Assembly: GCF_052425735.1 (NCBI RefSeq)
Contig: NC_135759.1
Location: 31,310,001-31,374,000, forward strand
Direction of reading: 5' to 3'
Length of the DNA: 64,000 nucleotides
DNA from: Oculina patagonica
Lineage: Eukaryota
Shown: piece by piece, positions 28,301 through 62,773 of the stretch
Numbering within the stretch: position 1 is the first letter of the stretch
Layout: each line of letters starts with the position of its first letter
Made by a program: the position numbers and the translations under genes
The notes under the pieces: model-generated
Seen by the model: the letters and a program-made list of their open reading frames with translations, nothing else
Database searches by the model: none
Told to the model about the DNA's origin: nothing

Positions 28301-31300
28301 GCCAAACTATTTGCGTGACATTGCATATTTTAAATAATAATAATGGATTGATGTGTGGAGAGAAAGAACTCAGAAAAGAAATTCTGAGTTCACAGATGGG
28401 ACTCGAACCCACGACCTTCCGTACACTAGTCGGACGCTCTAACCACTGAGCTACTGTGAACTCTAATGGTGAGCAGTAGTCATTGCATATTTTATTATGT
28501 TAATCTTAAGCGAACTTTTTCTGAAAGTTTATTCTTTTCATTTTTTGTTAACTTGATAATGGAGTCATGACGACTCCGAAACGTCGTTCGTTATTATCGT
28601 TTATTTTTACTTGCTTGTGTAATTCTTGTTTTAGGGTTAAAATAATCTCTTGTGACTGTCTTCAAAATAGAAACGGTTAATTTTACCGTGAGCGTATGTC
28701 GCCAGTATTGGAACAATTTTTCGATACCAGCTGTACTTTGCTGAACATTGATAGATAATTGCGCGAAGCCGTATTCAGTTCCATTGCAGAAGTTCCCTAA
28801 GTTCCCAGTGGGCGAGCTGCTGTTGTCAGCTGAGCTATATCCATTCGTCCATAACCACGCAGCAACATGGAATCCAACGGAAGGAAACGCCACAATCTCT
28901 GGCTGACCTGCAAGTGCATTATAAAAAATAATTCATCTAAATACTACCCATTTCAATTGATAAGAGAGAAGACGAAAGGAAAAATAGCGGAAGTTTTCGT
29001 GGTGTCAAATAAACGGACAGCGGTAAGCCTTTATTTTGGGTTGCCGTACGAAAGCTAGCTAGACCAATGAAAGACGACAAATCGAAACGGTGTATTGGCT
29101 GTTTACAATGCGGGATATTGCCGTTTTTGCACTTTTTATCATCTTGTTAAAAAAGGAAATATTGAAATGAAAGTCAACAAGTTCAGACATACAGATGGTT
29201 CTTAATGGTCCAATCAAGTCTGTCAAACAGAAACTAGTGTCAATTCAATCTCCCTAAACAATGATTTAAAGAGATAAGGATTGGACTGGTTTGAAAAATC
29301 ATAATTTGGTTTTTGTTGGCCTCAATGAAAATCATGCTTAGGCCGACTTGTATGAAAAGGTAACTGGTCACTGTTTGGAAAACCTCTTTTTCAATAGCAG
29401 AATTGACGTGCTATATATTTCATTGCCACCTTAAGGTTTTGGTATCATGTAAAAATTAAGGCAGGATTGACCAAAAACCACGTCTGTTTAGTAATATTTA
29501 AATAGGTAATGATATATTTAAGTGTATACTTACGGATAATGTTGTTATTAATCGAAGATTTTGCAAGTTGGTACATGTGTTTTCCAATCAGAGGCAGAAA
29601 TCCTCGACTGATGTACTTGCGTGCATCAGCCTCTTTAGTATTTCCCAAGTTTTCTTTTCCTATGTATTCCTGTCCATCAGAGCTCTCCTCAGAAAAATTC
29701 ATTCCTGATGTTTGATATAATATCTAAGGAAAGAGAGAGTACTGTTAATGTGCTAGTTGATTATTTATCTGTGGTAAACAAAAGAAGTTCAGCATTACTT
29801 TTGATTGTGGCAAACATATGACTCCACGTTAACTGAATGGAACATTGAAGTGGAATACACTAATAAACCAAACCATTCAGACCGTCGTGCCTTCTTGCGG
29901 ATGCTTTGTTTCTCAGAAATAAAACATAGATCTTTAATCAGAAGGGAAACTGTAATGGAAATACGAAGAACTTTGCATAGGTATTTTCGAGACGCTGCCA
30001 TGTCTAGATCATAGGAGTATTAAAAATTGAAGGGTGCATTCCATACAATGGTTGATAATGTTTATTATGAACGATAGGAACTTATAGGGAAGGAAAGAAA
30101 CCAAAACGAACTAAACAAATAAAGTAATATGGATAAATTTGAAAATTTCCTGTTCTCAAATTCATCAACAGCTGAGCTTGAAATCATGAAGGTGCATATC
30201 CTTTGGATACTATCCAAAATATATGCACCTTTATAGTATACTGTGGAACCTCGATTTAACGAACCTCTATATCGCGAAGTCCTCGATATAACAAAAGATA
30301 TTCTTCGCCTCAGTAATAGTAAAATATATGGAAAGGTACCTCGATTTAAAGAAACCTCGTTATAGCGAACATATTTTGCCAGTCTCTTGGCCCTTCGTTA
30401 TACCGAGGTTCCACTGTACTACAGTTATGGGTGCGTAAGAAGCAGCTTAAAATTTTTCTTTAAACTCACTTGTGCAGTAAATGCTGCTATTTCTTGTCTG
30501 TTCGTGATCCCAGCCTCACTCAGTGCTTGCATATAAAAAGGATATAATGCCCTTGTCCTTGTTGTATCCCCAACCATCTTCAGGTAAGAATCCAGAGAAA
30601 CATTGATGTTTTGCGGGATGTTAGGAACTATTGTGCTATCCAAAATACAGCAAACAGTGTTTTGGTCCGTGAGGGTTGAATTTCTTAAGGTGGCTCCTGG
30701 GCAGTCTCTAGCTTCCATGTAGTAACCACGGAAATATGGAGAGTACTTTGAGTAACACTTTAGGCAGTCGATTTTTTCTGTAGCGAAAAAGAAGAAAACA
30801 ATTTTCATAAGCGCTTTACCTTTCACCGGTGTGAAACATAATTAAACAATTGCTTCAACTTTGAAAGAACCTTGTTTGAAGATCCCTAATCTATCCAATT
30901 TAGCACAAAGTGTATATCAAAAAAATTGTAATAATGATTAGGCAAATCTGTCTGAAGCGGTTCTCTTACTTAGAGGTGGTATTTATTAAACAAATAATTT
31001 AGTTTTTGTTTAATTTATGGATTGCGCCGCAGTAGGGAAGAATATTCCTTTGTCAACTGGATTGAAGCTAATTGCAAAATGTGAATTAATTCGCGACGGC
31101 GGCCGCCGCCGTGTAACAAACGACCCAAAATGTCCCATCCATAAGTTTGTAAATCGGCAGCACGAGAAAAAAGCTCATCCATACCAACTGAATACAATTC
31201 GTTAAGTTAAACCAAGTCAAAAAGAACCGAAAATCAGTGAAAACCAACTGAAAGTTTTAAATTTTACATGCGGACTTTTCAATGATAAACAATAACAGTA

Positions 31301-36678: not shown

Positions 36679-39600
36679 TCAAGCGTTTACATTTGATTCG
36701 TTGGTTTCTTCTTGTAAGGGTTCTATCGCTGTATTAAGTTTTCCCTTGTTGTTCTGTTTCGGGCTTTTGTTTGTGACTCTTTGGTGCTTCCTCTTTTTAT
36801 TGACTGGAATCGTGACGGGAGGCAATTTAACTTTTGCAGACCCTTGGCTGGGTTCCCTGGAAAGCCAAGCTGGCGATGGGCATCGCGGCTCACTGTTAGT
36901 GCCATTAGGTTTGACGACTGCTTCTTCAGCCGAGTAGTGGTGACCGTTCTCTTCAGATCGGAGACTGGGATTAGCAGTAACACCATGCAACCGGCTGTTA
37001 GTGGTGTCATCTGAGAGCGACATCATGTTCACATCCTTAAAAATATATTAAAAAAATAATGATAAACAATCAGACGGCTAGCCTATCGACCATTAATGTA
37101 CCCCAAACAAACCGATCACACAGAACGCGCTACTTTCAACGTCTACTCATTGCCGCAATAATTAAACCTTTTCTGAGTGACCATAATACAAATGTAGGGA
37201 CATCATCGCATAACAAGGAAAACTAAAAATGTCCTTACTGGACGATTTTGCAAGTTTTGTGCCAAATTAAAACCTTCTGTTAAAGGGGCAGTGTCACGAA
37301 TGAAGTCTTCTAAGTTCTTGTGTAAACAATGCTAGAATTATGAACATGCACTCGCGGATCAACAAAATAACCTTTGAAGAACTAAGGAATAAGGCATAAA
37401 ACCATTCTCCAAGAAGTGAAAAACAGTTATCAATGGTTCTTAAGTAATTTTCTTCCAAGTAAAACTGTCAAACTTGATGTTTTCAAGTTTCTATAGGCCA
37501 TTTCTTTTCCACCAGCCCGTAACCACACCACTGTTTAACCATTTTAATGACTTGTTAAGTTAAACGTTTAAGCAAGGTCAGGCCACCATAATTGGATTTG
37601 AAGTTAATACCAACACCTTCATTGGAGTTTAAAGTAGCACTAACTATAGTGACACTGCCCCTTTAAACAGAAAATTAACAAATATCGAACATAATTACCG
37701 ATATTGTAGCTCCATGGGATGTTGGAGCAGCAGCATTAGAAGAAGGAGTAAGTGACGAAGGTGAGAAGAAGGTTGTTCGACGGCTGGACCAGATTTCTTT
37801 CTTTCGCTGCATTGCCTTCCGTACCTTAACAAAAGAAGACAGAGTAAGAAAAGTATCCCGTATAACACCTGGGAATTGTTTGAAGTACGAAATCATTTGT
37901 CTATTCCGCGTAATTCTCCCAACAGTTCTTTCATGTGTCTTAAGCCGCCTTCACACGACAGCCAGTTATGGCCAACTCGAGTTGGAAAACTCAAGTTGGT
38001 GTGTGTTAACGACGCAACAACGTAAAACAAGTTGGCCAACTGTTGGCGACAAAAAGAACTTGTCTCTATTCTTACCAACAGTTTGCCAACTGTTGTTGTG
38101 TCGTTTACACACACCAACTTGACTTTGCCAACATGAGTTTGCCAACATGAGTTTGCCAACTTTAGTTTGTCGTTTGAATGCCACTTTAAAGTTCTGTGTA
38201 ATTCCATATTGCTTTTTGCACGTTTTCTGTATCTTTAATACAAAAGTTAAAAAAATGTAAATTAAGTTATCTAGGATACTGACAAAGAACATCAAAATTC
38301 AAGAACAAAGGTCGCATTATCTTACCTCTGAGTTAAGTAAACAGTGAAATATGAAAATGAAGAATCCTTGCAAGGAGTTGAAAATGGCAAAAAGGTACTG
38401 AAACGCGATGGTGTTACTGTCCAGTGCCAAAATACCAAACAGCCACGTAATGCCGAGTAATGGAAAGAGAACGACTGCTGACTTGACTCCAGATCTGATG
38501 ATTTGAAATTAGAAGTAATCAGGTTTATTAGAATGTGGGCGGAGCGTTTCAAGGAGCCTCTAAACAGACCATCCCCAGATGACCTACCAGCAGCCAAAAC
38601 AGTACGAAAACCAAAATGGCTTTCGATCAGAAATGCAAGTAGGTCATTAAGGAATGGGAAGACAATGTGTTCAGATAGCAGGGAATGCAAGCAGCCATGT
38701 ACAAGAAAAACGAAGAATTTTTGACATTTTATAAGAAATTTAATAATGGCATACTTTGCGTGCCTTAAAAAAATCATACCTATCCTACTTACTTGACAAG
38801 GTCAAACTTTGTTGAATGAGAGACTCCATTTGTTTGTATCTTAATGATCTCTCTGATGACCATGACAATGATTACTGTATTAACCTTCAAGACAAAGTGA
38901 TCAAATAATTAAACAGTTTGCCATTTCAGGCACCAGATGCTGGAATTGTAGGCATAATAGTGTCCAGTAATGAGCTCGCACGAGTCCTGGCATGGGGCTC
39001 TGAGTAGCGCTTTTGGGAAGCAAACTAGGACTATAAACGTGTACCAGCAAAATTTTAAGGTCAACTTGACTGAAAAGTCGGCGGTTAACTGGGAGGGACT
39101 CAGAGCAGACTATATTGTGGGGGACTTTCAATTCCTACTCGCTTCATAATACAGCATTGAATAATTTCCGGTAGTGCCACTTTTGTTCGAATGTAGACTC
39201 ACTTGTTCGCTCAGAACATACTTGGAAAACAGAAGTGGATCAGTGATCAGCAGATGATGAGTACCTCAGCAGGAAGTTTTGATGAACACGGAACGTTAAG
39301 CTCTCAATGAAAACTTAAATTAACATTGTAGTTGTAAAGGAATGCCCACACAACCGCTTGGTATTCTTGGTCAGTATATTTCTACTCACCAGGATTATCG
39401 CCAATGCCGGTCCTACAAAAGCATAAATAACTCCGTTTGCCACTGACAGCCAGCAGCTAGGAACAATAAGACGTTCTAAGTTATTTGAATAAGAGATGAC
39501 TAATGGAGAATTTTCTTAATTTAAAAAAATGAGAATAAACGAGAACAAGATTGCTTTGCCCTTATCAAAAATGAAAGATTTGTTTCATCTTATCCGGTTG

Positions 39601-42600
39601 GACACACTGAATGCAGTTACTGGTGTAAACCGGTGTCGACCGGCTGAACCCTTTATAAAAGTTTTGTTGGGACAAATTTGTCAGGAACAGTAAAAAAAAA
39701 AAAAAAAATGATTGCCTTCCTTCGAATGAGTGCCTTCCGTTTGCGTGAGAGTAATTCGTGTTTTATACCTGGAGTCTGTGCCGTAACCATCATGCGCAGT
39801 ACTGGCAGCAATAAGAACAACAATTCCAGGCAAACCTACGAAGCAACATCAAAACATTCACACGGTTTAAAACCTTTGTTGGTAATTAATAACCATTTAT
39901 AAATATAGATAACAGTATAGAATTGTGCGAGGCACATTGACGTTTGACCAGCAACCTGAGACGTATCTGTATAAAAACCACAAGTGCATTATTATAAACC
40001 TGATTATTAATGATCATAGCAATAAATTATTGGTCTTACCATATGCGCATAATCCATACATACGCAGTTGTTCTTTGCTGTTTTCGAAAACAGTGATGAC
40101 CATAAGGTAGAGATACACGCCTTCAACTAGCATCCACGCAAATGACACCAACAGAAAATAGTGAAGTAACACCGCTACCAGCGTGCAGGCAACCTATAAG
40201 AGGAAATTGAATAGATCGAATTTTGAAATCGTAAGTTAATTAAATCATCTATCTGAATCACTAATACGAACAAGAAGATGACGAAGAAGAAGAAAAATAA
40301 TACCTTATGCAAAAACAGCAGCAGCAGAATCAAAAACAACAACAATAGCACTAACAACAACAATAACAGCAAGAACGACGACGATAACAGCAACGAGAAC
40401 AACAACAAGAACAACGTTGACAATAAACAAGGGCAGCCGGGACACCAACAACTAACACTGACAAGAACAACAACATGAAGAAGGCAAACCTCTCCTAACC
40501 TCTAAGGATAGAAGTGACACTTACTGATAGCATGTCGTAAACAAAGAATAACGGAAACCCATAAACATGGTTAGTTTACGGTTAGGATTAGGGATACAAG
40601 TTAGCGATCGGTTGTTTGGTTAGAGGTTAGTGTTTTTGGTGGTTAGGATGAGCTTTTGGAAGAGTGTTTCGGACTGTTCTGGGATGTTCCGGTGTTCCCG
40701 GTTTTACTACATGCCCTTGTTGATGATATGTTGGTCTTAAAAGTACTTTTTGTCGATTAACAAACCTCATTACTAGTTGCTTCAATTCCTGCCAGGAAAA
40801 TTACTTGAAAGATCCCGATAGACAGCGCCAGGTTTAGGTGAATAAGGTTTCTCTCTGAACGCACACCGCTGTGGAGTATAAATGAATATATCCCAAATTA
40901 TATTAAGCGAACCAGCACGTCTGTTACAGTTTTTATCTTTTAAAGGTTCTTCTGAATTTTGCATTATCTGAAAAACTCAGAAAACATTATTTACGAGTTC
41001 CAGATAGGATTTTGAACACACGAACCCTCCGTAATCCCTGTAATCTAGTCGGATGCCCTACCTTTGAGCTACTGGAGACTCAATGGTGTGCAAGGGTGAA
41101 ATTGATGTGGGTCTGGACTAAAACCGCATCACGCAGTCACATAGTCAAATCAGGACAGGCACATATGACCCATTGTTGCATCACGCAGTTACTTTAAAGC
41201 AAACCTGAGATGCAACCATCCAACCACCAAGTAAGTCTTTCTGAAGAAAGACTATATTTCTTCAGAAAGACTCACTTCTGAATTAAAAGCTTAAAAAATT
41301 GACCATCTAAAATGATAAGGCGATCAAATAACTAAAAAAAGTCGAACTTACGACAAGCAGGAGATGATGACGACTGTAAGGGCGACTCCAACGAGTGACA
41401 ATCCACAGCCGACGTAAGTGATGATCTCTAAAGCTACAGCATGGGACTCATGCACCTAAGAAAGGAACGTCCGTCTTTTTATATCATAAATAATGATGGG
41501 GTAGAGCAGTTACTCAAACAACATTTGCGCGCACGGAAGTTTTTTTTGCCCACGGAGACTCCCGTGTTAAAGGAGCGAGAACGCTCGTGGCAAAATTTAA
41601 AATGAAACCTCAAAAAGGAGCCCACTCTGAGCGTGGCTCAATCTCTATTTGACCCCTTAGACATTCTAAAATAGACACACAATTAAAAGCTACAGTGACT
41701 AAAATGGCAATAAAGACATTGTCGTCAAATGCTTATACATATATAAAAAATTTTGAAGCTTTCATGTGAGATTCTCAATCATCAGCACGATACATCGGCG
41801 GTCTTTAGTTTGTTGCGTGCAATTAAGAGATACCTTGCTGACTACAAACATTTGCGTTCTGTCCTGAACACCCGAAGTTAGACCAAAATCTACAGTTAAC
41901 ACCATTAAAAAAGGGACCACGAGCCGGCATCCTCGCCCCTTTCGCAAGGAAGTTCCCGAAAGTAGAGAATTACACCATCACATACGAATATTGTCCAGTT
42001 AGGATAAGTACAAGTAACTATATGACCTTATTTCATTACCTCCAGGTCTGAATCTGACGTGACCTGCATCAGCACTGCAAAGTTTGTGAGATGATCGCAT
42101 TTGCAGACGGAATGTGTTTCATTTGAAGCAGAAGCATCCACCTCACATCCTTTCGTTGACCACAATCCACTGCCGTTAACACTCCTAAAAATATCGCGAG
42201 AGTAAATTTTTAGTGTGGTTTAATCTTTGTGACGTGTAAACTCACGTTTACTTTTATCCAATTTTGTGTCAGTGTTAAAGGTAAGTAATTCACCGTGATT
42301 GAAATTCTCAGTAGTTTAAAGCAAAAATATGCTAATCCAGGATAAGCTTGAATTTTGATTACAGTTTTACGACTGACTTTTCAGTGAGATTTTCTGTTTA
42401 TATGAAATTTCTGTCCTCCAATTTTGACGTTGTCTGGTCACAAACTCTAAGAAGCAGTGGCAATGAAAAACGCTTTTGCACAAAAGAAGTTAATGAACTG
42501 TTAAAGCTGGGTTTTTGTTGATTGGCCTTCAAGCAACCCGCCCCACGTGATTAAGTTTTATTTATTTTAATCAGTATTGACAAATTTGCAGAATATCTTC

Positions 42601-45600
42601 GGCAAACTTCCGGCTATCTTCGAACGTCATCGCAATTTTTTTCCAGTAAAAAACTTCGCGATAACTTTGGAATTCTCTTAAGGCTAATTTCCTTGCTGCC
42701 GCGCTGCGGTTATCTTTGCTTGTTTGCTGATTAAATCCAGATCACACTCACCCTCCAGTGAAGTCCCACCACACACAGACCGGCACCAGCGTTGCATTTG
42801 ATTTGTACTGAAAAAGTCAACATATTATAATTCTTCTCACTGGTTGTTTGTCTCACTGACAACAAACACAACTGAAACTGCAGTTCTAGTTATAATAAAC
42901 AAACCAATAATCCGTCTTCACTAAGCTTGGGCACTGTAAATTTTTTTTGTAACTGACCCTTGCTTCTTCCGTTTTGTGCTGGCGTCGAGTTCTCTCGCCG
43001 TTCTCACCGCGCGCTCATCGATCGAAAAAACACGAAAAAATAGAGGGCTGTGGACGGTCTACTGAAAGCGCAAACTTTTGGTTCATTGGGTAAAAAATAG
43101 TATCATAAAGACTATAACTCAAGAGAAACAATTTTTGTTGGAGAGAAAAAGTTATCTTTCATACTTGTATTCTTGATTCATGTAAAAAAAATAAATTCCA
43201 TAGCATACACATCTTCATTTGTCAATCCATAGTGGCACACTTACCTTCACGTGTTGAAGGGTGACACGAACATCCAGCTCTTGACTATGAGCTGCCGGCG
43301 GGATCACAAGACTTCCAATGACGCGGCTGTTAAGCTCGTAATGTGCATTTTCGCTTTCTTTTTCACTGAAAAAGCAAAATAATCCGAAATATGTTTTATT
43401 CTGGAAATACTTATACAATACTAGATCGCTAGAAAAACTTCACGAAATTAAATTGCGTATAATATGTTTAAATTAAAGGCCTGTATTACTTCCTTGAGGC
43501 CACACACGCATGGTGAGTAAGCGAAAATACATAAGACGATTGAACACTACACGAACTTTTAACAGTCAGGAGGACGAAGGAAAATGCAAATAACTGTTTT
43601 GTGAAGTATTTGCTCACATACTCTGCTTGTTGGAATCCATTGGATAACAACTATACTTACTTTGCGACCTCTGCTGGAGTCGATGGCAACATTTTATGCA
43701 AACTCTTGTAAATGACACTAAAAGCCTTTGTTTTGTTCCGAGGTCCTGTGAGAAAAATGTTACCCATTAACCTCCGCAGTTCCAGATACACAGCTCAGTG
43801 AAAGAGCGCGTGAATGTGAAATAATTCAGCAACCAATGCAAATGTTAAATCATCAAAATTAATAACTCGTTGCAATATTCATATAATAAAAATTGTTCCT
43901 GGTTACTATTCGACACTCACCAGCCATTTTCAAAGTAAGGAAATCGTTAATCCCTTGCCAGTTTTTGTCCATGTTGGACATTGAAAATCTGTAGTTATCA
44001 GACAACACTGATGCCTGCAAAGCTAATGCACAGAAGAGACATTCAGTGTTACTAGTGTTATAATCTACAATTCATGACAATTATAGATACTAAAACTTAT
44101 TTCCATTTGTTGACTTTACTAAGTGTGTCCGCTGCTAGCCACATCGACAAAACTTTGAGATTAATATCAAGAGTAGTCGAAATTGTTATTCTCCTTACAT
44201 ATTAAGAGAGATTACCTGGCAGTCTGGGGATTAGATAATAAACATGTAATTAACTTGGTTACATCGTTTTCATCAAAAACCAAGTTGAAAGAATTAACAT
44301 CACACAACAAAAGTAGGAGTATTGTGCAGCGAATATAAGAATATTCTAACAATAAAGCTTTTGGGTGAAAAAGGCCCATGAGAAAATAAAATGTTCTCAC
44401 CAATGTTGTCCTCCGATGAGCTAACTGGAGATGTTTCATTTGACCATTTGCCAGCCAACCCTTTTCCAAATAACTCTGTGATCTCAGCTATCTTAATCGC
44501 TAACGTTTTGTTAGACCGACGCCACTGCTCTTTATTTTTGTCCTCCATAACGTCATTTATAGCCTCTGTGCTTTCCTTGCATTTAAAAAAAACAAAAAAC
44601 AAAAAAAAAGAAACAAGGAGTCAAATGTTAAATAAAGCAACAAAAACAAAAACAACATACACTTTCCTTTTCGGCCTTCCCCAAAGATTGTCTTTCTCTC
44701 ATCTCAAGAGGCAGAAGGAAAAAAAAAACCGAAAGGCCCATTTACACGGCAGAAAATTTGTGGCACGGCTCTGATAAAATTGGTACGCGTACCAAAAAAA
44801 TAGCACTGATATCCTGTTTACACGTCCATTTTTCTACCGTGCAAAACTGCGTTACTGATAATGTTTTGGTGCGAGTAAAAGGCTCAACACCTTGTCCAGC
44901 GTACGCAATTCTGCCTTAGTACACATGCCGCTATTTCGTTTAAACGTCAAATACGAGTCGCGCATCTTTTCGGATTTTTCCCAGAAGACTAGAAAAGGGT
45001 GAATGTATATGGTTCTTGTTCAATTGGCAGTAGTGATGGCTTGTACCTCCCCTATTAACGACGACGATTATTTTCTTTACTGTTTTATTCTCCTCGCCTT
45101 ATTTGGATCAACTCCTTACATCATGCTCTTCCAAGGCAGAATTTAAGCTTTCGACTCTGGACACTAAGAGTCGAAAGCTAAAATTCTGCTTGGAAGAGCA
45201 TGATGTAAGGAGTTGATAGAAATATGCGAGAATAAAATAATAATACAAACAAATAATCGTCGTCGTTAATAGGGGAGCTACAAGCCATCACTGCTGCCAT
45301 TTACTGCTGCCATTTGAACAATAATCATATACCTTCACCCTTTTCTAGTCTTCTGGGAACAAGGCGAAAAGATGCGCGACTCGTATGTGACGTTTAAATG
45401 AATAAGCGGCATGCGCATTAAGGCAGAATCGCGTACGCTGGCCAAGGTTTTGAGCCCTTTACCCGCACCAAAACATTATTTAACGCAGTTTAGCACGGTA
45501 GAAAAAAGTACGTGTAAACAGGGTATCAGTGCCATTTTTTGGTACGGGTGCCAATTTTATCCGGGCCGTGCCAAACTTTTTTTGCCGTGTAATTGGGGCT

Positions 45601-48600
45601 CATAATATGTCCCAGCTTCCTACAGCATTGAGAGGAAGGTGCGGTGGTCTAATGGTGGACTCCGGATAGAGCGGTTCGGGCCTTCTCTGACAGTGCCTCT
45701 CTCCATCCAGGTGTATAAATCGGTACCGGGGGATCAAGTTCTGGGTAGCCTTTCGATTAAATAGTATCCCAACCAGAGGGGAGTACAGATACTTCTAGTC
45801 GATTCATGGTACAAAAGCCAGAGTTTAGCACCGGCCGTATGAGCCACGAGGCTCGACCTCTCCTACTTGGACGATTGTCTGCGTACTGAGGTGATGTTAA
45901 AGAAATATTTCACAATACAAGTTACCTTTGTGACTTGTACAATTTGCCGAAGCGAAGAAGGGGACTGGTCTGAAGGTATTGATTTCAAACTTTTCATCAT
46001 CGTGTCCATTGACTGCTTGAAGGTTTTGAGCTAAATACAAAGGTCAATATAGAGTTACGTTACAATGCCTCACACCTGAACGTACACATCTAATTTGGAC
46101 AAAAACAAGTTCGCAGCAATGTGAAATAAAGGTAGAGGTAAAACGAAACACATTCTTTAGTATCTTACGCTACATTTATGCATCTTACATCATAGAAAGC
46201 AGATTTGTAATCAGAATTAACCGCACCCTCCAACAGATTATTTCATGTTTTTAAGATCGATTGAGCATAGAAACAAAGCACAATAGGTTCGTATTGACTA
46301 ACCTATCTATTATCGCAAACAGAATGAAACTGAGTCCAGCCACAGGGAATAAACAAGATCCCCAACAATTCGTAAAAATAAACAGTGGAATGTTATTTTC
46401 TTCGCCAAAGGTCATGGAAGGAACGTAATGACTTCCGTGCGTTTTTATTAGACTGTACAACACTCTGTCGTCCTGCTTCCTTACTTCTTCGTCCCTCCTT
46501 AGTAAAGGTTGCCTTAACCAACACTGAGAACTAGGTGCTTGGTTTTAAATAATAAGGCTATTGCATTTTATGCAAGTTATACCCAAATTAACATTTAACA
46601 AAACAATTCTTTGTAAAACTCTTGAACAAATTTTAGTTTACCTTTTCGTCCAGACTCTCTGGACTTTCACAAGCCTCTGCTTGACATTTCACATTTTGTA
46701 AACCTTGCTCACTTCCGCTGCAATTGAGAAGGCTCAGCTCTGTGTAGGAAAAAGAAAATATTTGAAAATGACGTACATACCGGGGTTAGATTGCCTTTTT
46801 GGTTTTTGGCTAAATATACAATTATTTTTCGTGTAACATTTTATAGAGAGGATGAGAGTGGTTTATTGTTATTATAAACATTGAAATTACAATATACGTA
46901 AAAAAAAAACAAGATATAAATTCACGTTTGAAAGAAAACCTAGAAAAATTGACCATATAATTGTAAAATGGTGCAAATCGCGATATATTTTAACAGAGAT
47001 GTTATTAAATAGAAAAGACAAAATGCTAATGCCATAAGCCGTAGTCACAACGTTTGCAGTCTTCTGCTTTTTATGATTGTATGATAGGAATGGACGGGGA
47101 CTTGAAAATAACAGAACTTGTTTAGTGGTGATTGGTGATTTTTTTTTTTTAATTCAGTACACTGTAATGCGAATACCTTTTTCCTTCATACCTTTTCTCT
47201 CCATAACGAGATGTCTTGATGAAATGGGCTGCTGCTTCTTAAGTGTGGGGAATTTCGCTCCGACACACATAAAATCACCGAGAGTATTCTCCTTGTGTAA
47301 TACTTCCATGTAATACAGGTTGCCTTCATTGAGGTATATCTTTTTTGATGTTTGATTAGCGGAACTAAGAGAAGAAACTTTATTTACTAGAAATTAATGC
47401 AAGTTCATTCAGTGATAAAATTTTCTTATATTGGCGGGAAAAAGGAGAGTGGTCGCCGAATGACAAAATTGTCACAAGTAAAAGAAATTAGCATAAACCG
47501 TGAATTATCTAATTTAGCGATAGGCCGCTAAGTGATCAGTTTATCGCTTGTACTTTCTACAGTAGTTTGTCCAATAACATTTACACCCCTCTGTAACAGA
47601 CCTGGTGACACATGATTTTCCACCAGGTTTTCAACACAAAATCGACCAGGGAAGTAAAAAATCCACCAGGTTGATTACTTTTTTCCATCAGGGAGGGTGA
47701 TGATATATTAAATCTAACCAATTATTGATGCAAACTGTGAGCTAGTATGCAATCAACTTAGCGGGGTTATCGTGCACAGTTTTCCGCACCGATGTCGTCT
47801 AAGGGCTGTAGATGACACCGTCTTTTTTTTTTCGCATTGTACGCAAACAACTGAAGTAACATACTCTTTGTATCCTGCTCATACACGGAGAAAAGTGGCG
47901 AAGGAGAAACGGCAAACGGGCCGTTTTGAGATCCCCGTGAGTTCTTTGTATCGAACAGTGAATTACCGCCACTAGATCCGCAATGGGTCAAATTTAGCAA
48001 ATAATTGTCGCAATGAGCCAAGGAGTCGCCCTACTATTGACATGGTTAGTTCACCCTTGGACTAGACTTGCCTACAAGTCGTGCTCAGCAAGCGCAAAGA
48101 GAGAAGAGCACACAGAGCGCGAAAACGAGAAACGAGAAGCGAACGACTTGTAAAAAGTCAACCCTTGGGCTTGAAGCAGTCGCCGGGATTATATTCCTAA
48201 AATCCTCTGAAATTCTCGCATGCACGTTTTTGTCCATCAGGGTATTAAACAAGGCACGCAATGCACGCAGAAGCGATGACGAACAGAAGAACAAATTCCG
48301 CCAATAACCTTATGATATAAGGTGATGGACTGACATCATCGCCTGAAAATGATTACACTTCCTTTTGATGCATGTTACTTTTCCAGTTCTTAGCAGGACT
48401 GCAGGCAGGATTTGAAACGACGGTTCTGAAAGATGCAAACGACGTAACGATGGATCTGAAAGATGCAATCGTGTGAACGCCGAAGATGTAAGCTACTCGG
48501 GAACTCTTCCGCTCACTTCGCTCGCGTAATCCTTTTCGAGAGCCTATTCACAGGCTAGCTACTCGGGTTCCAGGAGACATGCCTCCCCGGGAAATTTTGA

Positions 48601-50015
48601 AAAAAAATAGACAGGCTGAAATCACATTTCGTGCGTTTTAAGAGGAGTTTCGTATGCAAATAGGCACCTAAACTGAAGTAAACTTAATAAACCACGATTA
48701 TTTCTAGACCTTTTCAGTTAAAATCAAAGCGTCTTATTTTTGGAAGGGAAACTGGACGCGCTTCACCAGGCAATCAACCTTACACTCGACGAATTACACC
48801 TGCCAAAACATACATTAACGACTAAAAATTCCTAAACTGCGCGTCGAAGGTCTTTAAGAAAGTCTAGGTAAGCGTTAATTCAGCCAGATATTCGATAGTT
48901 TTTCAAAGAAATTGGGAGATGTTTTCGTGGGATTATAATTATTTTCTCGACTCAATCTGAATACAAGTTAAATTACTTTTCCAGAAGGTAAATGGCATAA
49001 TATTTATTATCAAAAGAGCCTAGCATCAAGAGACAGAATCAGCGCCTCTCCACTCGCGAGTGCACCAAGATATATTCGCGCGTGCCCCAAGGTGAGCCTG
49101 CTCGCAGGCTAAGGACAGATCCAGAGGCTGCCTAGCACGGGCGCACCTAAATTTAAACTGTGTCATCCGTTTACTTTCAAAGTTGAAAAATGTTTAATAT
49201 GCTGGCCCTTATTCGTTGATCCATTTTTAGAAGGTCAAAGCATAAAAAAATCTAAATAAGAGAACCGTTTGCTTATATTTTTTACATGTCAAATAAATTA
49301 TCTCTTTTTTGGATGTAGCGAGCAACGAAAAATATGTGTTAATTAATGACTGCTGTCCCCCAGCCCCGGGCTCCAGCCGTAGGCATCAATAGTTTCATGT
49401 AGGTGAAAGCTACACAAAGTTCTATTTAGACAGTACTTACAATTTGAGGCAGCTTAATTAAAATTTACCGTAATACGCCACTTGAATGATCTTGAATGTA
49501 CTTGAATAACTGACGTGTATTTTACATCACATTGTGCCGGCGGGCTGCAAAGTTAAAAATGATATTTTATACATCAAGCGCCTCTCAAACTGCTCGAGGC
49601 TGCTTAATCGAAGGGAAAAAGCCGCTTAATACTCACCAAGAATTATGTGGGTCAAGCTGATTATCCTCTGCGTAGTTATTCGATAAAACGCTGTAAAAAG
49701 CCGGGTCAAAAATACTTCCACACATTTATCTTGGGCCGCGCGCGCTGTTCAAATCGCTCAGCTCTGAATCATTCACAAGCTCGTAATACATACAGTATAA
49801 AAGGAAACATATCTGTTTTGTCTCTTCAGTGGCGTGCATGACAGCAGAACAAGCGACGAAAACAATAGTAAAAGTTAAAAATTACTTTTTGCTATATTTA
49901 CATCGAGTTATTCCTCGCGAAGCGAGGCCGAAGGCCGAGCGTAGCGGGGTGTATAATTTTGTCCCTCAAAGGGATCAGGCGGGATGAAATCTCGTGTGGA
50001 GTTTACGGTCATATA

Positions 50016-50054
<39 letters not shown>

Positions 50055-50181
50055 GAGCTTGGTGTGTGGCGGAAATGACGTCACACGGCCGCCGCGCGCT
50101 GGTGGCCTAATGGTAAGGCGTCGAACTTGAAATCAGATCTTCGGAACTGAGGTCGGGGGTTCGAATCCGGCTAGGGTACGT

Positions 50182-50212
<31 letters not shown>

Positions 50213-51965
50213 TGGGTTCGAATTCTGAGCCTTTCATTTTTATCGTTTTTCTTTTCGGATTAAAATAACATTGATCTCCACATAATACTCCCTCAACGCC
50301 TATTCAGGCTATAAATCTTTCATCGCCATCAGGGGCGCGCGGGCGGAGGCTTCGAATCCTCCTGCCGTTCGTTCTTCTTCTTTTTTTTTAATGCCATCAA
50401 ATAAATGTCCAAAATGCGACTATCCAATAATTTGTCGATGATTTTGAAAATAGCCTGCGCTTCCCAACGCTTTATACCTCTTTACGAACCAGAAAAAGCC
50501 ACCATCTTCAAAGCGGAGTAGACCCTGGGAACGAGGGTGTCGCGGCCATGCCCGTTGAAATTTCTAACAAATATATCTTTCTGCCTACTGTGGAAAATTG
50601 AATATGTACAATTCAATAAATGTTCAACTTCAAATAATCCACTCCTTATTTATAACACCCCCCCCCCCCCCCTCCCCAACCCAGAGCTTCGCGAGGCCCT
50701 GCGAGTCACGTATTACTAGTTAAATTATATTTTTGCTGCGCGTCGTTTTTTTTTTTGTTTATTTAAGCCAGCAGAAAGATTTCGGTTGATTTTTCCTGGC
50801 CAGGTAAACAAAATTTTTCACCGGGGAGAAAAAAAATCGACCAGGGATTTTTCAGATAATCACCAGGTAGCAGGGAGGTCAAATTTCCACCAGGGAGAGC
50901 AAAATAACCCACCAGGTCGGGTTCCACCAGGTCTGTTACAGAGGGGTGTACATTTTGATCATTTTTTAGTCCAAGCATTGCTAATTCGTGCTAATATTTC
51001 CCCAAAGAGTGCGCATACTGCATCAGAAGTACTTCTGACTGCACGTAAATTTGTGCACCGGCGGTACAGGCGGTTGTTTATTCATTTGAATGTGAAACAA
51101 ATATCGGAGAGGAAGGGTAGCTTGTGAAGCCTGGTTTTCACTAGCGACGCAAGCACATGTGCAAGGAAAACAGCTCTTATTTCACCATGAAAACGGCTTC
51201 GAGTCAAGCAAAAGCACAGGCGCATTGCATTTTGATGCTTGTGCTTGCGGCATGCACAAGCACAAGGATCAAATTTTGTCCTTTTTGCGTGATTGCGCTG
51301 GTGCTGGCGTCGATAGGGAAAACCAGGCTTTACAGGTGTGCAGTTACTTCGGGAGTCGCGCGAAAAAACAGCTAGGATGTAACAGGCGTTGTGATTGCCA
51401 ACTGTCTGGGCAAGATTTCCTGTTATTCGTACAGGTATTAGAAAAGAAAAACACAGGCAAAAGAGCTGCAAAGAAAAGCATGATAAACGTGTTATTAACT
51501 CTCAAAAGCTCGGAACCATACTGGAAGAATATTACCTAAGTTATAATTAGACTTACTTGTCCCAGACATGCTGTCTGGTATGTTGGCGCTGATCAACAAT
51601 GAGGCGTTTCCCGGCGGGTAGTTCATTGTCGCTCATCCATAGCTGGCAGTCGTTATCGCAGGAAGTCTGGAAGGTATAATCGCCTGTCTCTGGAGCTCTG
51701 AAGAAAGACCTTAACCGCTGACCGTAATAATCACCGCTGGATGGTTTGTAAAGGCAAAAGGTGTCGATGAACTGCGTATTAGAAGGAGCACAGGGGTAGG
51801 AACTGCTGGATATTAAATCATCCACTTGGTCTCCTGGCACGTTTGTCCAAAGTTCACGGTACACTGCCAAATAAAAAGAATTGCTCAGACGGCTGATTAC
51901 ATGAACCCACAGGCATTGTGCTTTAAGATTTTGTTGTGCATTAATAAAGGATCTGATGATGATGG

Positions 51966-52011
<46 letters not shown>

Positions 52012-55000
52012 AATGATGATGAAATGTGGGAATAAAACCTCCGTTCTTATGACTTTTACTCTGATAAAGATCAAAGATACGTCATTTCGCTCCCTAGATG
52101 GCGTAGACAGAATACGAGCCGCAGGCGAGGGCCTTAGAAAAAAGTGAAAAAGAGGTTTTATGCCAATGATGGATTTGATATGGGATAAAGATATGGGAGC
52201 AAGGTTTCGACAACTTCTTTTATTTGCGGGCGCACAAAAAATTGAGATATACTCTGATAAATAATAGCATTTTTTACGAGAGCTGTTAAACGTGGGCCGT
52301 TTATTGGTTGTCAAAGTTATACATTATAGCAATACCTTTTTTAACTGGGCAATTCATTTCCCACGAGTGAAGGAACTGTTTACTTTGTGGTTCAAACATA
52401 AGTCCGGTTGATAATCCTGTGCGATGGCGTGTTCTATCGTTGGCGCAATCATAATAAGCCCTGCAGTCGTCTGGGTCAGCGTGCAAACCAGAAGATTTGC
52501 CAACACAAAAGTCTGAAAGATAAAAGCAGAGAAGATACAAAATAACTGGCATTCACAGCAATGAAAGTGGGATAACACTTGGATTGCTTTAATTTGTTGA
52601 TTAACATGAAGCACTATAGTGGTAAATTTATGTAGCTTAGAGTTACTAACAGTACATTATGTACATTATGTCAATATGTTCGTTTCCCGCGTTGCTGTCT
52701 CTCTGTGAATGCCATGCAGGCCTCGAGAAATAGTCTCTCGTGAAAATTACGAGCCTTGCCTACAATTATCGCGTGTGCGAAGTCTATGCTATGGACAAGC
52801 GCGTTTGCATGCTGTGCAACCTTGGAATTGTTGTCTCCAACACGAACCGCCCTTCTATGTTCTTTTAATCTTGTTTCCAAGGCTTTATCTGTTTGACCAT
52901 AGTACACGAAATTGCAGTCCACACAGCCTTGATATAAACAGATATTATGCTGCTAAGCGACCAAACTTTATTGTTTCAGCACTCGGTCGCTTTTGAGAGC
53001 TCATTCGCGCAAACGAGTGTTTCAACTGTATGCCAGTTTTCAGACAGGGCGAACCTTTCAACATATAAATAAAGTATCATTCAAAGGAAATATCGAGATT
53101 CTAAGGGACGGACCATTATTTTTTTAGAAGGAGGGGATTAATTTTTTTAAGAATTTGCAAACAATTTTTCCGGCTGCAACTTCCTGCAGACAATGTTTTT
53201 TTATGTCTGCAAACAATTTATTTGGATTTTTTTTTTTTTTGCTTTTTGCTTTTTGCTTTTGCAGCAATATTTTTTCAGGTTTTTTGATTCCCCCTCCCCT
53301 CCAAAACAATTATGGGACTAAAGGAGTTTCCAAGGAATCAGTCATTAAAGCCTAGCAATACGGACACTAGAATACAAAACATGTGTACCGGATATATTGT
53401 ATTCTGGGGTACTTGTTCAGTTGTATTGGTGCGTATTGTTTTTCAGTGCTCCATCGCTTTGAATTTTTACTGCACTATTTTACTTCACCTCGGAAACACA
53501 CAAAAGGGACCCACAATTACTGAATTGTATCCAGAGCGGGATACATATGAATTCTACGGCACAAGCATGAAAGAAAAAAGCGCGCGTAAATTTTACCATG
53601 CTCTGGTTTGGTTGGTAGCTATTTTTATACGAGCCTAAAGAGTAGAAAACATCTAGCCAACACAAACAAATAAATATTGTTCTGGAGAAATGACTAGATG
53701 TTTCTACGACATGATACAACGAGAAATGTAAAAGTTCATAAAGTATATAATAAAGTTAGATTTTGTTTTTACTACATAATATGACCAGAAAGTTCTCGTT
53801 TTTGCTTGAAATCGCTTTTAGCGGTTTTGAAATTGTGAAAATATTACAATATTGTAAACTGATTCGATACTGATGACTGGCGAGACACTGAATTATGACA
53901 GTTATTAAAACCCTTATATTTATTCTACGTTTCAATATTCGACCCCGGCAGATTAGAAAAGGTCTGCTCTGCCAGATTATTAAAGATAAATAACAAACGA
54001 ACTGATGGCGGTAAAACAAAGCTTATAGAGGCGACGTAATTATTGTTTACTAAAGTTTCTTATTCGCGAATTTTGTGCAAACAGGATTAAGAAATTCATC
54101 GACGATTTCGTGATCTGCATAAAAGATTTTGTATGCACTCACCTTTGAATTAAGCCTCAAAGAAATGATTTAATTACACCCTGTTCGCGGAAATGAACGT
54201 CTTAGCGATAAATCTAGCTAAATATAATAGACTGACGTGTATCCCCTTCAGCTATTAGCACGTCACAATCAATTTCTCCTACAAGATGGTTTTGTTTTCT
54301 TAGAAAGGGAATAAATTAGAACCTTAATTGCTGTCAGATGGCCTTGCGTAAACATGCCTTAGAGTACTTACAAGTACATTATGTATGGCGGAAACAAATC
54401 GTTCAATTGAAGTTAAAGCTCATGTTATTTTTTTTCAGAATTTCACGCTAAAAATAAAGTTTGCGTATTGCGAAATATTGAACCTGATCAATGTCAGCGG
54501 GGAGCAATACTCTGGGTAAATATTTTCATCAAGAAAAACAAGAAGTTAACTCAGGTGGACAGCTGTATACATGATCTGACACTGCGATGTATATGATATT
54601 CATTTTAAAAGCTAAATGATGAACGCAAACTTTTTAATTTCCTAATTCTTGTTTGACTTTAGTGTTGTTTCCTTTAATTTTAAATTTTTAAGAAATAGGC
54701 TGTATTTTACTGCGAAAGAAAAGAGGAAAAATATAATGTATACGAAACTGAAAATACAGTCTCAACACCAACGAATGTCAAATTTGTAGCCATTAAAAAT
54801 ACAATTCGAAAACGAAAATAAAGATACCTAAAAAATACAAAGTAAAACTGCGGAAAGATAGTGTACGAGTAGCGATCTAACTCGCTTTTCTGGTAAAAAG
54901 AAATGCATTTGAAGTCTAATTTTCTGCCGTTGTTTGATTGATATGCTCTCCTGCCAAAAAGGTTTAATCAAGTGCATGTCATAAACACTATATAGGGGTA

Positions 55001-55757
55001 TTTTAGCTTTGGTTAATAGACTGAAAATAAATGTCAGAATCTCAGTAGTCAATACATGTTTTCCCTGTCACGCCACGAAATGACTGTGAGTAGAATTTCC
55101 GCAGACGGATAACATTATTATTTCTATCAAAAACCGCACGGTATGGACAGTTTCAACTGTTACATACAATAAAGCCCGAACATTGATTAAACCCGTTCTT
55201 GGACCAGTTTAGACACCTTCATCAGTCTAAGTTTGGTTTGTGATGTTTGATGTTTTCCTTGTTTAATAAGATTAGCGTCAAAAGTCTCAAATATGCCAGC
55301 GACGAGCAAATTATGGATTTAATTCTGCTGTGTACAGTTTAAAAAGAACAAATCCAATAGGAATTCTTCACTTCGATTCCCCGTTCTGTGGTAACGCCTT
55401 TATAATCATTCTGATCTTTTCAAAATCCAATATAAGACGACTCTGCCCTCCACAAGTAAATTATTGAATAGCAAAATAACTAAAGCTACGCAAAATAAAC
55501 GTAGCAAACAAAACATCCCGCAGATACATGTCCCGTATAGGTCTACTTACTTTTGTCGTAGTAATCCTTGGTAGCAGAAGAAAACACAAACTGTCGAAAA
55601 AAAGAAAGGCCATAGCCGTCTATTTCTCAAAGCCAACAGTAAAGCAAATATCGAACTTAATTTCTCTAAGCGTGACAACCCTAGAACAGGCTAAGAATTT
55701 CAACAATATTCAAGACCGTACCTCAATAAAAATAATGCAAATAGCAACAACCTTCAT
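36679..55757 (-). CDS. Gene C: adhesion GPCR with CBM14 (chitin-binding type 2) and PA14 domains, GAIN/GPS and 7TM (about 952 aa)
   Basis: 22 phase-consistent exons: 55722-55757, 55551-55590, 52336-52512, 51557-51863, 47192-47364, 46642-46739, 45926-46030, 44401-44575, 43921-44022, 43661-43745, 43245-43365, 42752-42807, 42040-42184, 41352-41455, 40766-40868, 40040-40193, 39769-39835, 39390-39456, 38793-38884, 38326-38494, 37699-37824, 36679-37035. Motifs: signal [78 protein letters not shown]. Confidence 0.92.
37284..37662. mobile_element. Kolobok-like MITE
   Basis: TIR AGGGGCAGTGTCAC/GTGACACTGCCCCT with a TTAA TSD. Confidence 0.85.
37941..38188. mobile_element. Harbinger-like MITE; second copy at 62966-63202
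   Basis: GCCTTCACACGACA terminus and internal TTGCCAAC repeats. Close inverted homolog near 63 kb. Confidence 0.75.
40275..40480 (+). repeat. AAC-rich low-complexity intronic tract
   Basis: Degenerate (AAC)n/(AAG)n. Confidence 0.85.
40950..41280 (-). mobile_element. Decayed tRNA-derived SINE, same family as 28333-28480
   Basis: Shares AACTCAGAAAA...GAGTT.CAGAT...CTAGTCGGA.GC...TGAGCTACT with the 28.3-kb copy. Confidence 0.65.
42040..42807 (-). other. GPS autoproteolysis motif and Stachel of gene C
   Basis: [37 protein letters not shown], the canonical H-L/T cleavage site. Confidence 0.95.
44734..45600. mobile_element. Palindromic MITE (about 865 bp, diverged arms)
   Basis: GGCCCATTTACACGGCA...TGCCGTGTAATTGGGGCT. 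The arms pair up to a central AGCTTTCGACTC/GAGTCGAAAGCT at about 45146-45179. Confidence 0.85.
45630..45860 (+). mobile_element. Decayed tRNA-headed SINE
   Basis: A-box-like TGGTCTAATGG and core CAGTGCCTCTCTCCA.CCAGGTGTATAAAT.GGTACCGG. Confidence 0.6.
47584..50948. mobile_element. 3.4-kb non-autonomous DNA transposon in the PA14 intron of gene C
   Basis: Perfect TIR CACCCCTCTGTAACAGACCTGGTG, TA on both flanks, subterminal CACCAGG repeats, no transposase ORF. Confidence 0.9.
49908..50720 (+). mobile_element. Helentron/HINE-like element with a tRNA-like cassette, nested in the 47584-50948 element
   Basis: Sub-terminal IR CCTCGCGAAGC/GCTTCGCGAGG, (TA)n, CTAGT 3' end. A box TGGCCTAATGG at 50103, B box GGTTCGAATCC at 50158, then poly-T. 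Confidence 0.6.
51128..51330. mobile_element. Short MITE
   Basis: TIR AAGCCTGGTTTTC.CTA.CGACGC at both ends. Confidence 0.8.
51955..52021 (+). repeat. (GAT)n microsatellite, intronic
   Basis: About 22 GAT-type units; the source of the poly-I/M/D pseudo-ORFs. Confidence 0.95.
52336..52512 (-). other. CBM14/peritrophin-A chitin-binding domain exon of gene C
   Basis: [22 protein letters not shown]...GLMFEP...NCP matches the CBM14 pattern C..G..ADP.DC..YY.C....GL.F. Four of six Cys are retained. Confidence 0.85.
52660..53070 (-). mobile_element. Penelope-like GIY-YIG endonuclease fragment
   Basis: [21 protein letters not shown]...NSKVAQHA...HSIDF...RLFLEA. Confidence 0.85.
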
Positions 55758-61430: not shown

Positions 61431-62773
61431 ATGTCACATGTTAAAGACACTGACGCGTCCCAAGCCAATAACTCGCCTGACTTAATAATAAACTACGAAA
61501 GAAATAATTCTGATGATAACAGCGGTTCATCTTATGACGAGGAAACAAAGCTGGTAGATTCAGCAGAACACGAGCTTATGCCGATGTGGAAGGCAGCTGC
61601 TAACTTTATTTGCGACGTAGAAGGAACAGGTCTTCTGGGTTTACCATATGCAGTTTTAAATGGCGGTGTCGTTTGCCTTGGCAGCGTTGATTATTGTTCC
61701 TGTGATATGCTGCTACACAGGTAACATCATGGTACAATGTTTATATGGAGACAGCCCTACACCCGGTGGACGGAAACCACGTCTGCGATCCAGTATTGAG
61801 GAACTGGGAGAGGCCTGCTGGCCTGGAATTGGAAGAAAGGTTGTTTTGGCACTACAAAACACTGAGCTACTAATGCTTTCAGCTTCGTACCTTGTCCTGT
61901 GTGGCACATTTCTAGATTATGCTTTCCCTGCATTGCCATTTACAAAGATCCTGTGGAGCTGCATTGGTGCGGGTGTGGTACTTCCCACGGTGTTCCTAAA
62001 GAGCCTCTCAAACGTTGCTTGGTTGAGCTTGATTGGCATCGTATCCGTGTTAGTTCCAGTTGGTTCTGTAATGTGGTATGGAATAAGCCACAGTTCTGGT
62101 TGGCAACTCAGTTCAATCCCACTTTGGAAACCGGAAGGAATTCCTGTAGCTTTTGGGATTGTTATATTCAGCAATGCGGCTCACAGCATTCTTCCACGGC
62201 TAGAAGGAGACATGGCGAATAAAGGAAAGTTTAATGTAATGCTGGGCTTTTCATACATATTTATAACATGCCTCAAGCTAGCATTTTCTTTTTGCGGCTT
62301 TTTGTCATTTACTACACATACGAAGGATCTTGTCACTAATAACCTCCCACAAGGTGTGGTCTATTACATTACATGTGTGTTTCTAGGGATAAACGTCCTG
62401 GCATCTTATCCATTTCCCGTTCTTATTGTCGTTAGGTCCATTGAAGATGCTATATCGCCAGATAGTATGCTAGATAGACTGCCAACAGCTGTTTGGTTTG
62501 TCTGTGTGCGAGTGTCTTTGGTGCTTCTCACTTTGGGCGCTGCGGTAGCTTGTTCCACACTTTGCACTGATGCTAGCGTTTGTTGGCAGTTTGACTTCTG
62601 CCACAACGTGCTTTGTATTGCCCTGCTTGTTTCATCTGAAATTAAGACATGCTAAGTTACGTATCTATCAGAAAATTCTAGATTATTGTATCATCGCGTT
62701 TGGATTAGCTGCTGCTGGTTTCGGCATTGTTTTCTCTGGAAAAGCTCTAGTCGCAGTGTATGAAGAAAGATAA
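61431..62773 (+). CDS. Amino-acid transporter (Aa_trans/AAAP family, VGAT/SLC32-like); single coding exon with two apparent +1 frameshifts (about 446 aa when corrected)
   Basis: WKAAANF..EGTGLLGLPYAV..GG, CCYTG...CLY, LPTVFLKSLSNVAWLS, FGIVIFS, VPHF..MLAFVGSLT....FVLPCLFHLKL. Removing one T at about 61673 and one at about 62550 joins three ORFs. Acceptor at about 61405; candidate 5'UTR donor AAAG/GTAAGT at about 59544. Confidence 0.88.

Follow-up and report, generated by a model that had tools for sequence, protein, structure and literature searches.

An adhesion GPCR gene of hexacorals with a CBM14-like module and a PA14 domain ahead of a GAIN domain and an intact tethered agonist

Gene structure and domain organization

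The window analysed here is a stretch of 64,000 nucleotides from the coral Oculina patagonica (contig NC_135759.1 of assembly GCF_052425735.1, positions 31,310,001 to 31,374,000), and it contains a minus-strand gene with 22 coding exons that runs from the ATG at 55757 to the end of the stop codon at 36679. The gene is predicted to encode an adhesion G protein-coupled receptor (GPCR) with a CBM14-like module and a PA14 domain in its N-terminal part, hereafter called the head. The gene model was built by stop-to-stop translation of the minus strand, followed by a scan for frame-keeping pairs of GT and AG sites; the exon borders were then refined by tblastn with orthologous proteins. The coding sequence of 2859 nucleotides (nt) translates into 952 amino acids (aa) without any internal stop codon. 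All introns have GT-AG ends, the phases agree at 21 of the 21 introns, and within the model neither a stop nor a start signal separates the head from the receptor parts. A complete 22-exon open reading frame (ORF) at 36679–55757 had been reported in the original prediction, and our independently constructed model arrived at the same coordinates and exon count. The surrounding coral genome is AT-rich (about 38% GC).

Domains were assigned by Pfam searches with single exons of the window and with orthologues (designated below by P numbers), and AlphaFold2 (AF2) was run on the head of an orthologue. The order of the parts is signal peptide, CBM14-like module, PA14 domain, a short cysteine linker, GAIN domain with GPS, and a full 7tm_2 seven-transmembrane (7TM) domain. 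The predicted succession of CBM14, PA14, GAIN, GPS and 7TM is real, as judged from the Pfam matches of the window exons and of the orthologues; the word "tandem", used of CBM14 and PA14, is to be taken as a single CBM14 followed by a single PA14, without repeats.

Exon 1 (55722–55757) contains the start codon and the first half of the signal peptide, with a length and pattern as in the N-termini of the orthologues, and exon 2 (55551–55590), located by tblastn with P0021 and by its splice sites, supplies the remainder of the signal peptide and the mature N-terminus. The CBM14-like (peritrophin-A) module is encoded by exon 3 (52336–52512), which was assigned from the Pfam CBM_14 match and from alignments with orthologues and with the CBM14 of chitotriosidase and other chitinases. 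The PA14 domain is interrupted by a 4.2-kb intron: exon 4 (51557–51863; Pfam, phmmer, fold search and profile alignment) encodes its N-terminal two thirds, including a SCDNDCQLW loop, and exon 5 (47192–47364; tblastn and a splice joint) its C-terminal third, which includes YYMEVLHKE. Exon 6 (46642–46739; splice sites and two joints) encodes the short PA14-GAIN linker with three cysteines. The GAIN domain, assigned from orthologue Pfam matches and joints, occupies exons 7–12 (42752–46030, with the individual exons at 45926–46030, 44401–44575, 43921–44022, 43661–43745, 43245–43365 and 42752–42807), and the GPS, the HL/T triad and the tethered agonist lie in exon 13 (42040–42184). The 7TM domain is spread over exons 14–20 (38326–41455; exons at 41352–41455, 40766–40868, 40040–40193, 39769–39835, 39390–39456, 38793–38884 and 38326–38494), as indicated by Pfam 7tm_2 and hydropathy peaks. 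Exons 21–22 (36679–37824; tblastn and orthologue alignment) encode a cytoplasmic tail, about 160 aa long, in which PAWLS, KLPPV and KGKLN..IEP..EE motifs are conserved, and the stop codon.

GAIN domain, GPS, tethered agonist and 7TM domain

The GPS in exon 13 scored 49.5 bits in Pfam and reads CVWWDF...LWSTKGC...SVCKCDHL/TNFAVLMQV, with four cysteines, two tryptophans and the H-L-T triad; in the translation, HLT falls at 42085–42093 and TNFAVLM at 42067–42087. The putative cleavage point is L524/T525, and 16 residues separate it from the exon that encodes the first transmembrane segment (TM1). In an alignment with the two human receptors, the seven residues that follow the cleavage site match the tethered agonist of ADGRL3 at every position and that of ADGRD1 closely. 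Both elements had been predicted, the cleavable HL/T consensus and the TNFAVLM agonist (Stachel); in the consensus the triad, the four cysteines and the two tryptophans are intact, and the agonist is present and matches the ADGRL3 core exactly. Six coral orthologues share the residues H, L, T, N, F, A, L and M without exception, and the Nematostella sequence is TSFAVLM.

Pfam detected the GAIN domain in four of the five orthologues scanned (32–45 bits; none in Montipora). Two transmembrane exons of the window matched 7tm_2 with 53.0 and 42.6 bits, and the orthologues scored 190–217 bits over positions 3–250 of the 250 in the profile. The nearest solved chains to the GAIN-7TM half are ADGRL3 (275.6 bits) and ADGRD1 (271.1 bits). 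From these similarities the protein is classed as an adhesion (class B2) GPCR, with 7TM and GAIN domains that most resemble those of the latrophilin (ADGRL) and ADGRD1 types. Of the domains that mark the latrophilin head (rhamnose-binding lectin, olfactomedin and hormone-receptor), Pfam found none in the five full-length orthologues or in P0021.

Splicing and transcription

Contigs from four public sequencing runs were aligned to 42040–47364; exons 1–4 lie outside this stretch. Contigs of three runs (X1, X2 and X7) contained the joints 46739/47192, 46030/46642, 44022/44401, 43365/43661, 42807/43245 and 42184/42752, which coincide exactly with the model borders between exons 5-6, 6-7, 8-9, 10-11, 11-12 and 12-13. 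The joints have CT..AC ends, equivalent to GT..AG on the minus strand, and the intron depth was almost nil. In total, nine exon borders between the second PA14 exon and the GPS exon were reproduced by spliced contigs, and the joint 46739/47192 was present in contigs of runs X1 and X2. The joints 46739/47192 and 46030/46642 place PA14 exon 5 in one spliced chain with exons 6 and 7; exons 8–13 are likewise joined.

Intron-free transcripts of other corals unite CBM14, PA14, GAIN, GPS and 7TM in one ORF. P0153 is an unbroken 952-aa ORF on a 3309-nt contig, and P0021, P0156 and P0157 are ORFs of 547–697 aa on contigs of 2.1–2.7 kb that unite CBM14, PA14 and GAIN/GPS; since the gene has 21 introns, contigs so short cannot be genomic. 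The original prediction was to be abandoned if the CBM14 and PA14 exons proved not to be spliced to the GAIN exons, and both the joints in the runs and the intron-free orthologue transcripts show the parts to be joined. Judged from these contigs, the receptor gene is intact and transcribed.

At the junction of exons 9 and 10 (43661–43745 / 43921–44022) the contigs of three runs carry six extra in-frame letters, TCAAGT on the plus strand (Leu-Glu), which are absent from the window, and the joint itself shows non-canonical ends; one run has a variant with nine replaced letters. All orthologues have at least two additional residues at this point. A six-letter micro-exon was considered, and GACTTG and its shifted forms were sought in intron 9 of the window, where none was found; the extra letters are therefore read as probably reflecting an in-frame insertion or deletion of 6 nt (a deletion in the window) or, alternatively, an assembly difference, at the start of exon 10.

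Two observations concern the introns. In introns 11 and 7 (42930–43107 and 45600–45777) the contig word depth was about 1000–6500, as against tens on the exons, and many loose contig ends were seen at 42997–43064 in intron 11, with few near 45600–45777. These stretches look like expressed high-copy repeat elements; an Rfam search over the receptor locus, including these introns, gave no match. In the stretch 39684–39848, after exon 17, which encodes TM4, the window intron is open for about 15 codons. The transcript contig P0021 and the Orbicella RefSeq protein P0151 continue into the intron beyond the donor site of exon 17 and stop soon after TM4, and this read-through may represent a recurrent intron-retention isoform that encodes a truncated receptor.

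Conservation and taxonomic range

Orthologues of about 950 aa were found in Orbicella, Stylophora, Montipora, Acropora and the anemone Nematostella. The window protein can be aligned over its full length with coral proteins of 950–961 aa, without gaps at exon junctions, and its identity is 76–77% to an Orbicella-like transcript, 70% to Stylophora, 58–59% to Montipora and Acropora muricata, and 55% to a model from A. cervicornis. All five domains were detected by Pfam on P0021, P0153, P0152, P0155 and P0161, and all except GAIN on P0154; the RefSeq models of five other species have the same layout. The Nematostella orthologue (P0161, 952 aa) is 42% identical to P0153 over the head. With the same architecture in Nematostella, the arrangement is at least hexacoral-wide in the sequences compared and so predates the split between stony corals and anemones. 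Word-index searches restricted by region, with a coral and with the Nematostella N-terminus, found no adhesion GPCR with this head beyond Hexacorallia, but the search depends on shared five-residue words and does not imply absence elsewhere.

The degree of conservation was compared per domain, with Stylophora and Nematostella as references. Identities were 80 and 39% for the CBM14-like module, 68 and 44% for PA14, and 64–67 and 35–37% for GAIN, and the 7TM domain is 62% identical between coral and Nematostella. By this measure the CBM14-like module is under strong constraint, being as conserved as PA14 and more so than GAIN.

In the NCBI database the orthologues are named adhesion GPCR L3-like, L4-like or D1. 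These names reflect the 7TM domain only, and the labels "latrophilin-like" and "ADGRD1" conceal a separate family of cnidarian receptors.

The head of the receptor

The CBM14-like module was recognized by Pfam in exon 3 of the window (CBM_14, PF01607; 29.0 bits against a cut-off of 22.1, at 52337–52552). Four of the six consensus cysteines are present (C28, C42, C48 and C80, equivalent to C1, C2, C3 and C6), and the module can be aligned with chitinase CBM14 from Cys1 through the GL.F hairpin.

Exon 4 alone, which holds only part of the domain, scored just under the Pfam cut-offs (PA14 20.9 bits, GLEYA 23.7 bits). Among the intact orthologues, PA14 (PF07691, cut-off 24) scored 24.0–32.2 bits in P0021, P0161, P0154 and P0155 and 21.1–23.4 bits in P0153 and P0152. 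A phmmer search with exon 4 among 1.8 billion representatives yielded 4083 homologues, and the nearest non-orthologues are multi-PA14 proteins with PA14 scores of up to 248 bits. The structure of P0021 residues 1–262 was predicted with AF2; a 15-sequence alignment gave a mean predicted local distance difference test (pLDDT) score of 48 and was discarded for a 65-sequence alignment, which gave a mean pLDDT of 85 and PA14 block means of mostly 84–98. Foldseek matched the model to PA14 structures with probability 1.00, in agreement with a PA14 beta-barrel fold. The best matches of the modelled PA14 in the PDB are sugar-binding PA14 domains, namely Cea1A with N-acetylglucosamine (GlcNAc), Flo1/Flo5, the Epa adhesins, RsgI3 and MpAFP; anthrax protective antigen and the beta-glucosidase insert rank after these. 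Structure matches in the AlphaFold Database and the ESM Atlas were all PA14, with a root-mean-square deviation of 1.5–2.3 Å over about 162 residues for the former, and an ESM Atlas feature search gave no usable match. In a profile alignment the SCDNDCQLW loop of exon 4 falls on the "VDD" calcium/sugar motif of Flo5, with an invariant cysteine on either side of the column aligned with DD.

In the genome, the nearest PA14 paralogue (C2:26179846–26180124, 40% identity) is likewise encoded by two exons (locus L002, 3844–4113 and 6489–6617); no CBM14, GAIN or 7TM exons were found in the 10 kb around it. Four 10-kb pieces around paralogous PA14s contained no GAIN or 7TM exons, and two of these pieces omit the PA14 itself.

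Other features of the window

Two paralogous exons with complete VWA domains (88–708 and 25183–25989, both on the minus strand; 143–144.5 bits) belong to one or more neighbouring minus-strand genes. Putative GH19-like exons at 1339–1683 and 28597–28932 had no Pfam match at E < 0.001. A tblastn search of the receptor model against the rest of the window, including the neighbouring minus-strand gene or genes, returned nothing at E < 1e-3. On the other side of the receptor, the next gene is a single plus-strand frame of 331 aa (61660–62652) with a match of 120 bits to the amino-acid transporter family Aa_trans. Intron 2 contains a minus-strand ORF (52674–52952) with the motif FVYYGQT...LKEHRR and a weak match to GIY-YIG nucleases (17.4 bits, under the cut-off), and a similar motif is found on the plus strand at 28019–28315; both are probably remnants of Penelope-like retroelements. 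Intron 3 holds a long trinucleotide microsatellite (51900–52050), which would read as poly-Ile, poly-His or poly-Ser, depending on the minus-strand frame.

Proposed mechanism and ligand

We hold with moderate confidence that the gene specifies a conserved hexacoral adhesion GPCR in which the CBM14-like/PA14 head holds on to an extracellular glycan and the tethered agonist is activated by pull. The N-terminal signal peptide would direct the protein through secretion into the membrane. In the endoplasmic reticulum, the GAIN domain is expected from its intact consensus to cleave itself at HL/T (L524/T525), with the two fragments staying attached. Given the families of its two modules, the head could then anchor the N-terminal fragment to an immobile extracellular glycan, with a GlcNAc-type polymer, for instance chitin, as the foremost candidate. 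Relative movement would pull on the fragment and expose TNFAVLMQV, which, by homology with the solved structures of ADGRL3 and ADGRD1, would dock in the 7TM core and elicit G-protein signalling.

A glycan is our best guess for the ligand, and a plausible one, because both head modules belong to carbohydrate-binding families. For chitin in particular, its occurrence in Nematostella tissues and the chitin synthase genes of stony corals (PMC10216261) add plausibility. The original prediction had gone further and proposed binding to chitin; as stated this is not supported, being weakened by the replacement of Cys4 and Cys5 and by the variable DD column of PA14, and chitin as the specific ligand is unproven. 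The boldest version, which we regard as speculative and rather unlikely, is that here, for the first time, a GPCR would be seen to detect a structural polysaccharide directly, with the head gripping chitin or a related GlcNAc polymer of the animal's own matrix, of prey cuticle or of fungi and a pull freeing the agonist.

Several features of the head weigh against the proposed reading, and against chitin in particular. The orthologue CBM_14 scores are 20.2–26.9 bits, with several species at or under the cut-off. In the window, consensus Cys4 is replaced by Leu and Cys5 by Phe, so that the module does not have the six cysteines of the consensus; Cys4 is absent in all orthologues down to Nematostella, and Cys5 is kept only in A. 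muricata. In tachycitin-type modules the Cys4-Cys5 pair staples the hevein-like chitin-binding hairpin. The late Trp of the module varies as well, the sequence being HSW in robust-clade corals, HSN in Acropora and Montipora, and FAS in Nematostella. The Flo5 DD column of PA14 is DN in the window and in robust-clade corals, DD in Montipora and Nematostella, and NY in Acropora, and because of this variation a canonical calcium-sugar site common to the orthologues is doubtful. A large number of PA14 domains either bind proteins or lack a known ligand, and the fold family has non-lectin members such as anthrax protective antigen and the beta-glucosidase inserts. These points suggest, as a possible though less probable account, a receptor with the same tethered agonist and a head that does not bind chitin: the CBM14-like module would have diverged to become a structural cap or a module that binds proteins, and the ligand would be a protein or another glycan, carried for example by microbes, algal symbionts, mucus or matrix glycoproteins. 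Set against this account are the window CBM_14 score above the Pfam cut-off, the hairpin that aligns with chitinase CBM14, the strong constraint on the module and the GlcNAc-bound adhesin as top structural match of PA14; the glycan-holding head is the preferred reading.

The receptor half and the gene model were weighed in the same way. That the protein serves mainly in adhesion or as a scaffold, or signals without its tethered agonist, remaining uncleaved or constitutively shielded and with truncated isoforms, seems to us quite improbable. The models of P0021 and Orbicella P0151 that end after TM4 hint at truncated isoforms, a consensus GPS does not ensure efficient cleavage in all adhesion GPCRs, and the long conserved cytoplasmic tail would fit such a role too; yet the coral orthologues show no variation in the triad, in the cysteines and tryptophans of the GPS or in the agonist core, and Nematostella hardly any, the 7TM domain covers the full 7tm_2 profile, and its identity between coral and Nematostella is 62%. 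Hardly credible is an artefact of the gene model, in which the CBM14 and PA14 exons would belong to the gene of a secreted lectin, and this gene would lie upstream of one for an ordinary adhesion GPCR. The large intron within PA14 would allow it, and the joints leave out the border between exons 7 and 8 as well as exons 1–4. The RNA status of the runs is a guess, and their contigs, 95–100% identical to the window apart from the 6-nt difference, perhaps derive from close relatives. On the other side, the joints tie PA14 exon 5 to exons 6 and 7, transcripts of other corals carry all parts in one ORF, the phases match throughout with neither a stop nor a start signal between the parts, and the RefSeq models of the five other species have an equal layout.

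As a class, adhesion GPCRs are mostly orphans, and the central unanswered question about them is what the heads bind. With 952 aa, a two-module head and a textbook cleavage site and agonist, the present receptor is small enough and simple enough for a direct test of the idea that a GPCR is activated by force on a polysaccharide anchor, and its orthologue occurs in Nematostella, in which gene knock-out is possible. For coral biology, the protein would be a candidate sensor of matrix, prey or microbial glycans.

Comparison with known systems

Among the searchable papers, none was found in which an adhesion GPCR with PA14 or CBM14 is described; the two that name adhesion GPCR, PA14 and GAIN together have no bearing on the present domain combination, and surveys of GPCRs in coral (the receptome), sponge and choanoflagellates mention no PA14 or chitin-binding heads. 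The accessible part of the 2026 adhesion GPCR consortium review contains neither "PA14" nor "chitin", and to that extent agrees with the original statement that human adhesion GPCRs lack CBM14 and PA14. Novelty could be upheld in the sense that no describing paper was found, but the architecture is already in RefSeq in the form of automatic models. It is thus undescribed rather than unseen, a real, conserved and uncharacterised variant of a known receptor class. Diverse heads, lectin-type ones included, are a known theme in invertebrate adhesion GPCRs.

Human ADGRL3 is the best match for GAIN and 7TM, with the same GPS layout and the same TNFAVLM, and its head also begins with a lectin-type module. 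The latrophilin head, however, is composed of rhamnose-binding lectin, olfactomedin and hormone-receptor domains, whereas that of the coral protein is CBM14-like plus PA14, in a much shorter ectodomain. Human ADGRD1 (GPR133), the second-best match, has TNFAILMQV...HQVAL..ISYVGC after the cleavage site and a compact ectodomain with one adhesion module before GAIN; its head is a pentraxin/laminin-G-like domain, with no CBM14 or PA14.

For the head itself, the CBM14-like module resembles the CBM14/peritrophin-A modules of animal chitinases (human chitotriosidase, 6so0/5hbf) in Pfam score, size, predicted beta structure and alignable hairpin, but keeps only four of the six consensus cysteines of the chitinase modules. 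The fungal adhesins Cea1A, Flo1/Flo5 and Epa1/6/9 are the best fold matches of PA14 (E 6e-9 to 1e-5); they are cell-surface sugar binders, and Cea1A was crystallised with GlcNAc. Unlike the coral receptor, these adhesins are anchored by glycosylphosphatidylinositol or in the cell wall and have no signalling parts, the identity is only 7–15%, and their calcium DD is D-N in the window.

The PA14 of RsgI3 is the best sequence-profile match in the PDB (6qdi, 59.3 bits). RsgI3 of Clostridium thermocellum / clariflavum combines an extracellular PA14 polysaccharide sensor with an autoproteolytic domain and a transmembrane signal (PMC10328401), and thus offers a functional analogy with the coral receptor, in that sensing by PA14 is coupled to autoproteolysis. 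The bacterial protein is single-pass and acts by regulated proteolysis on a sigma factor, and it is unrelated to GAIN and 7TM; the logic would be convergent, with homology at PA14 only. If the coral head does grip a structural polysaccharide, the receptor would be an animal counterpart of the polysaccharide-sensing, autoproteolytic RsgI factors of bacteria.

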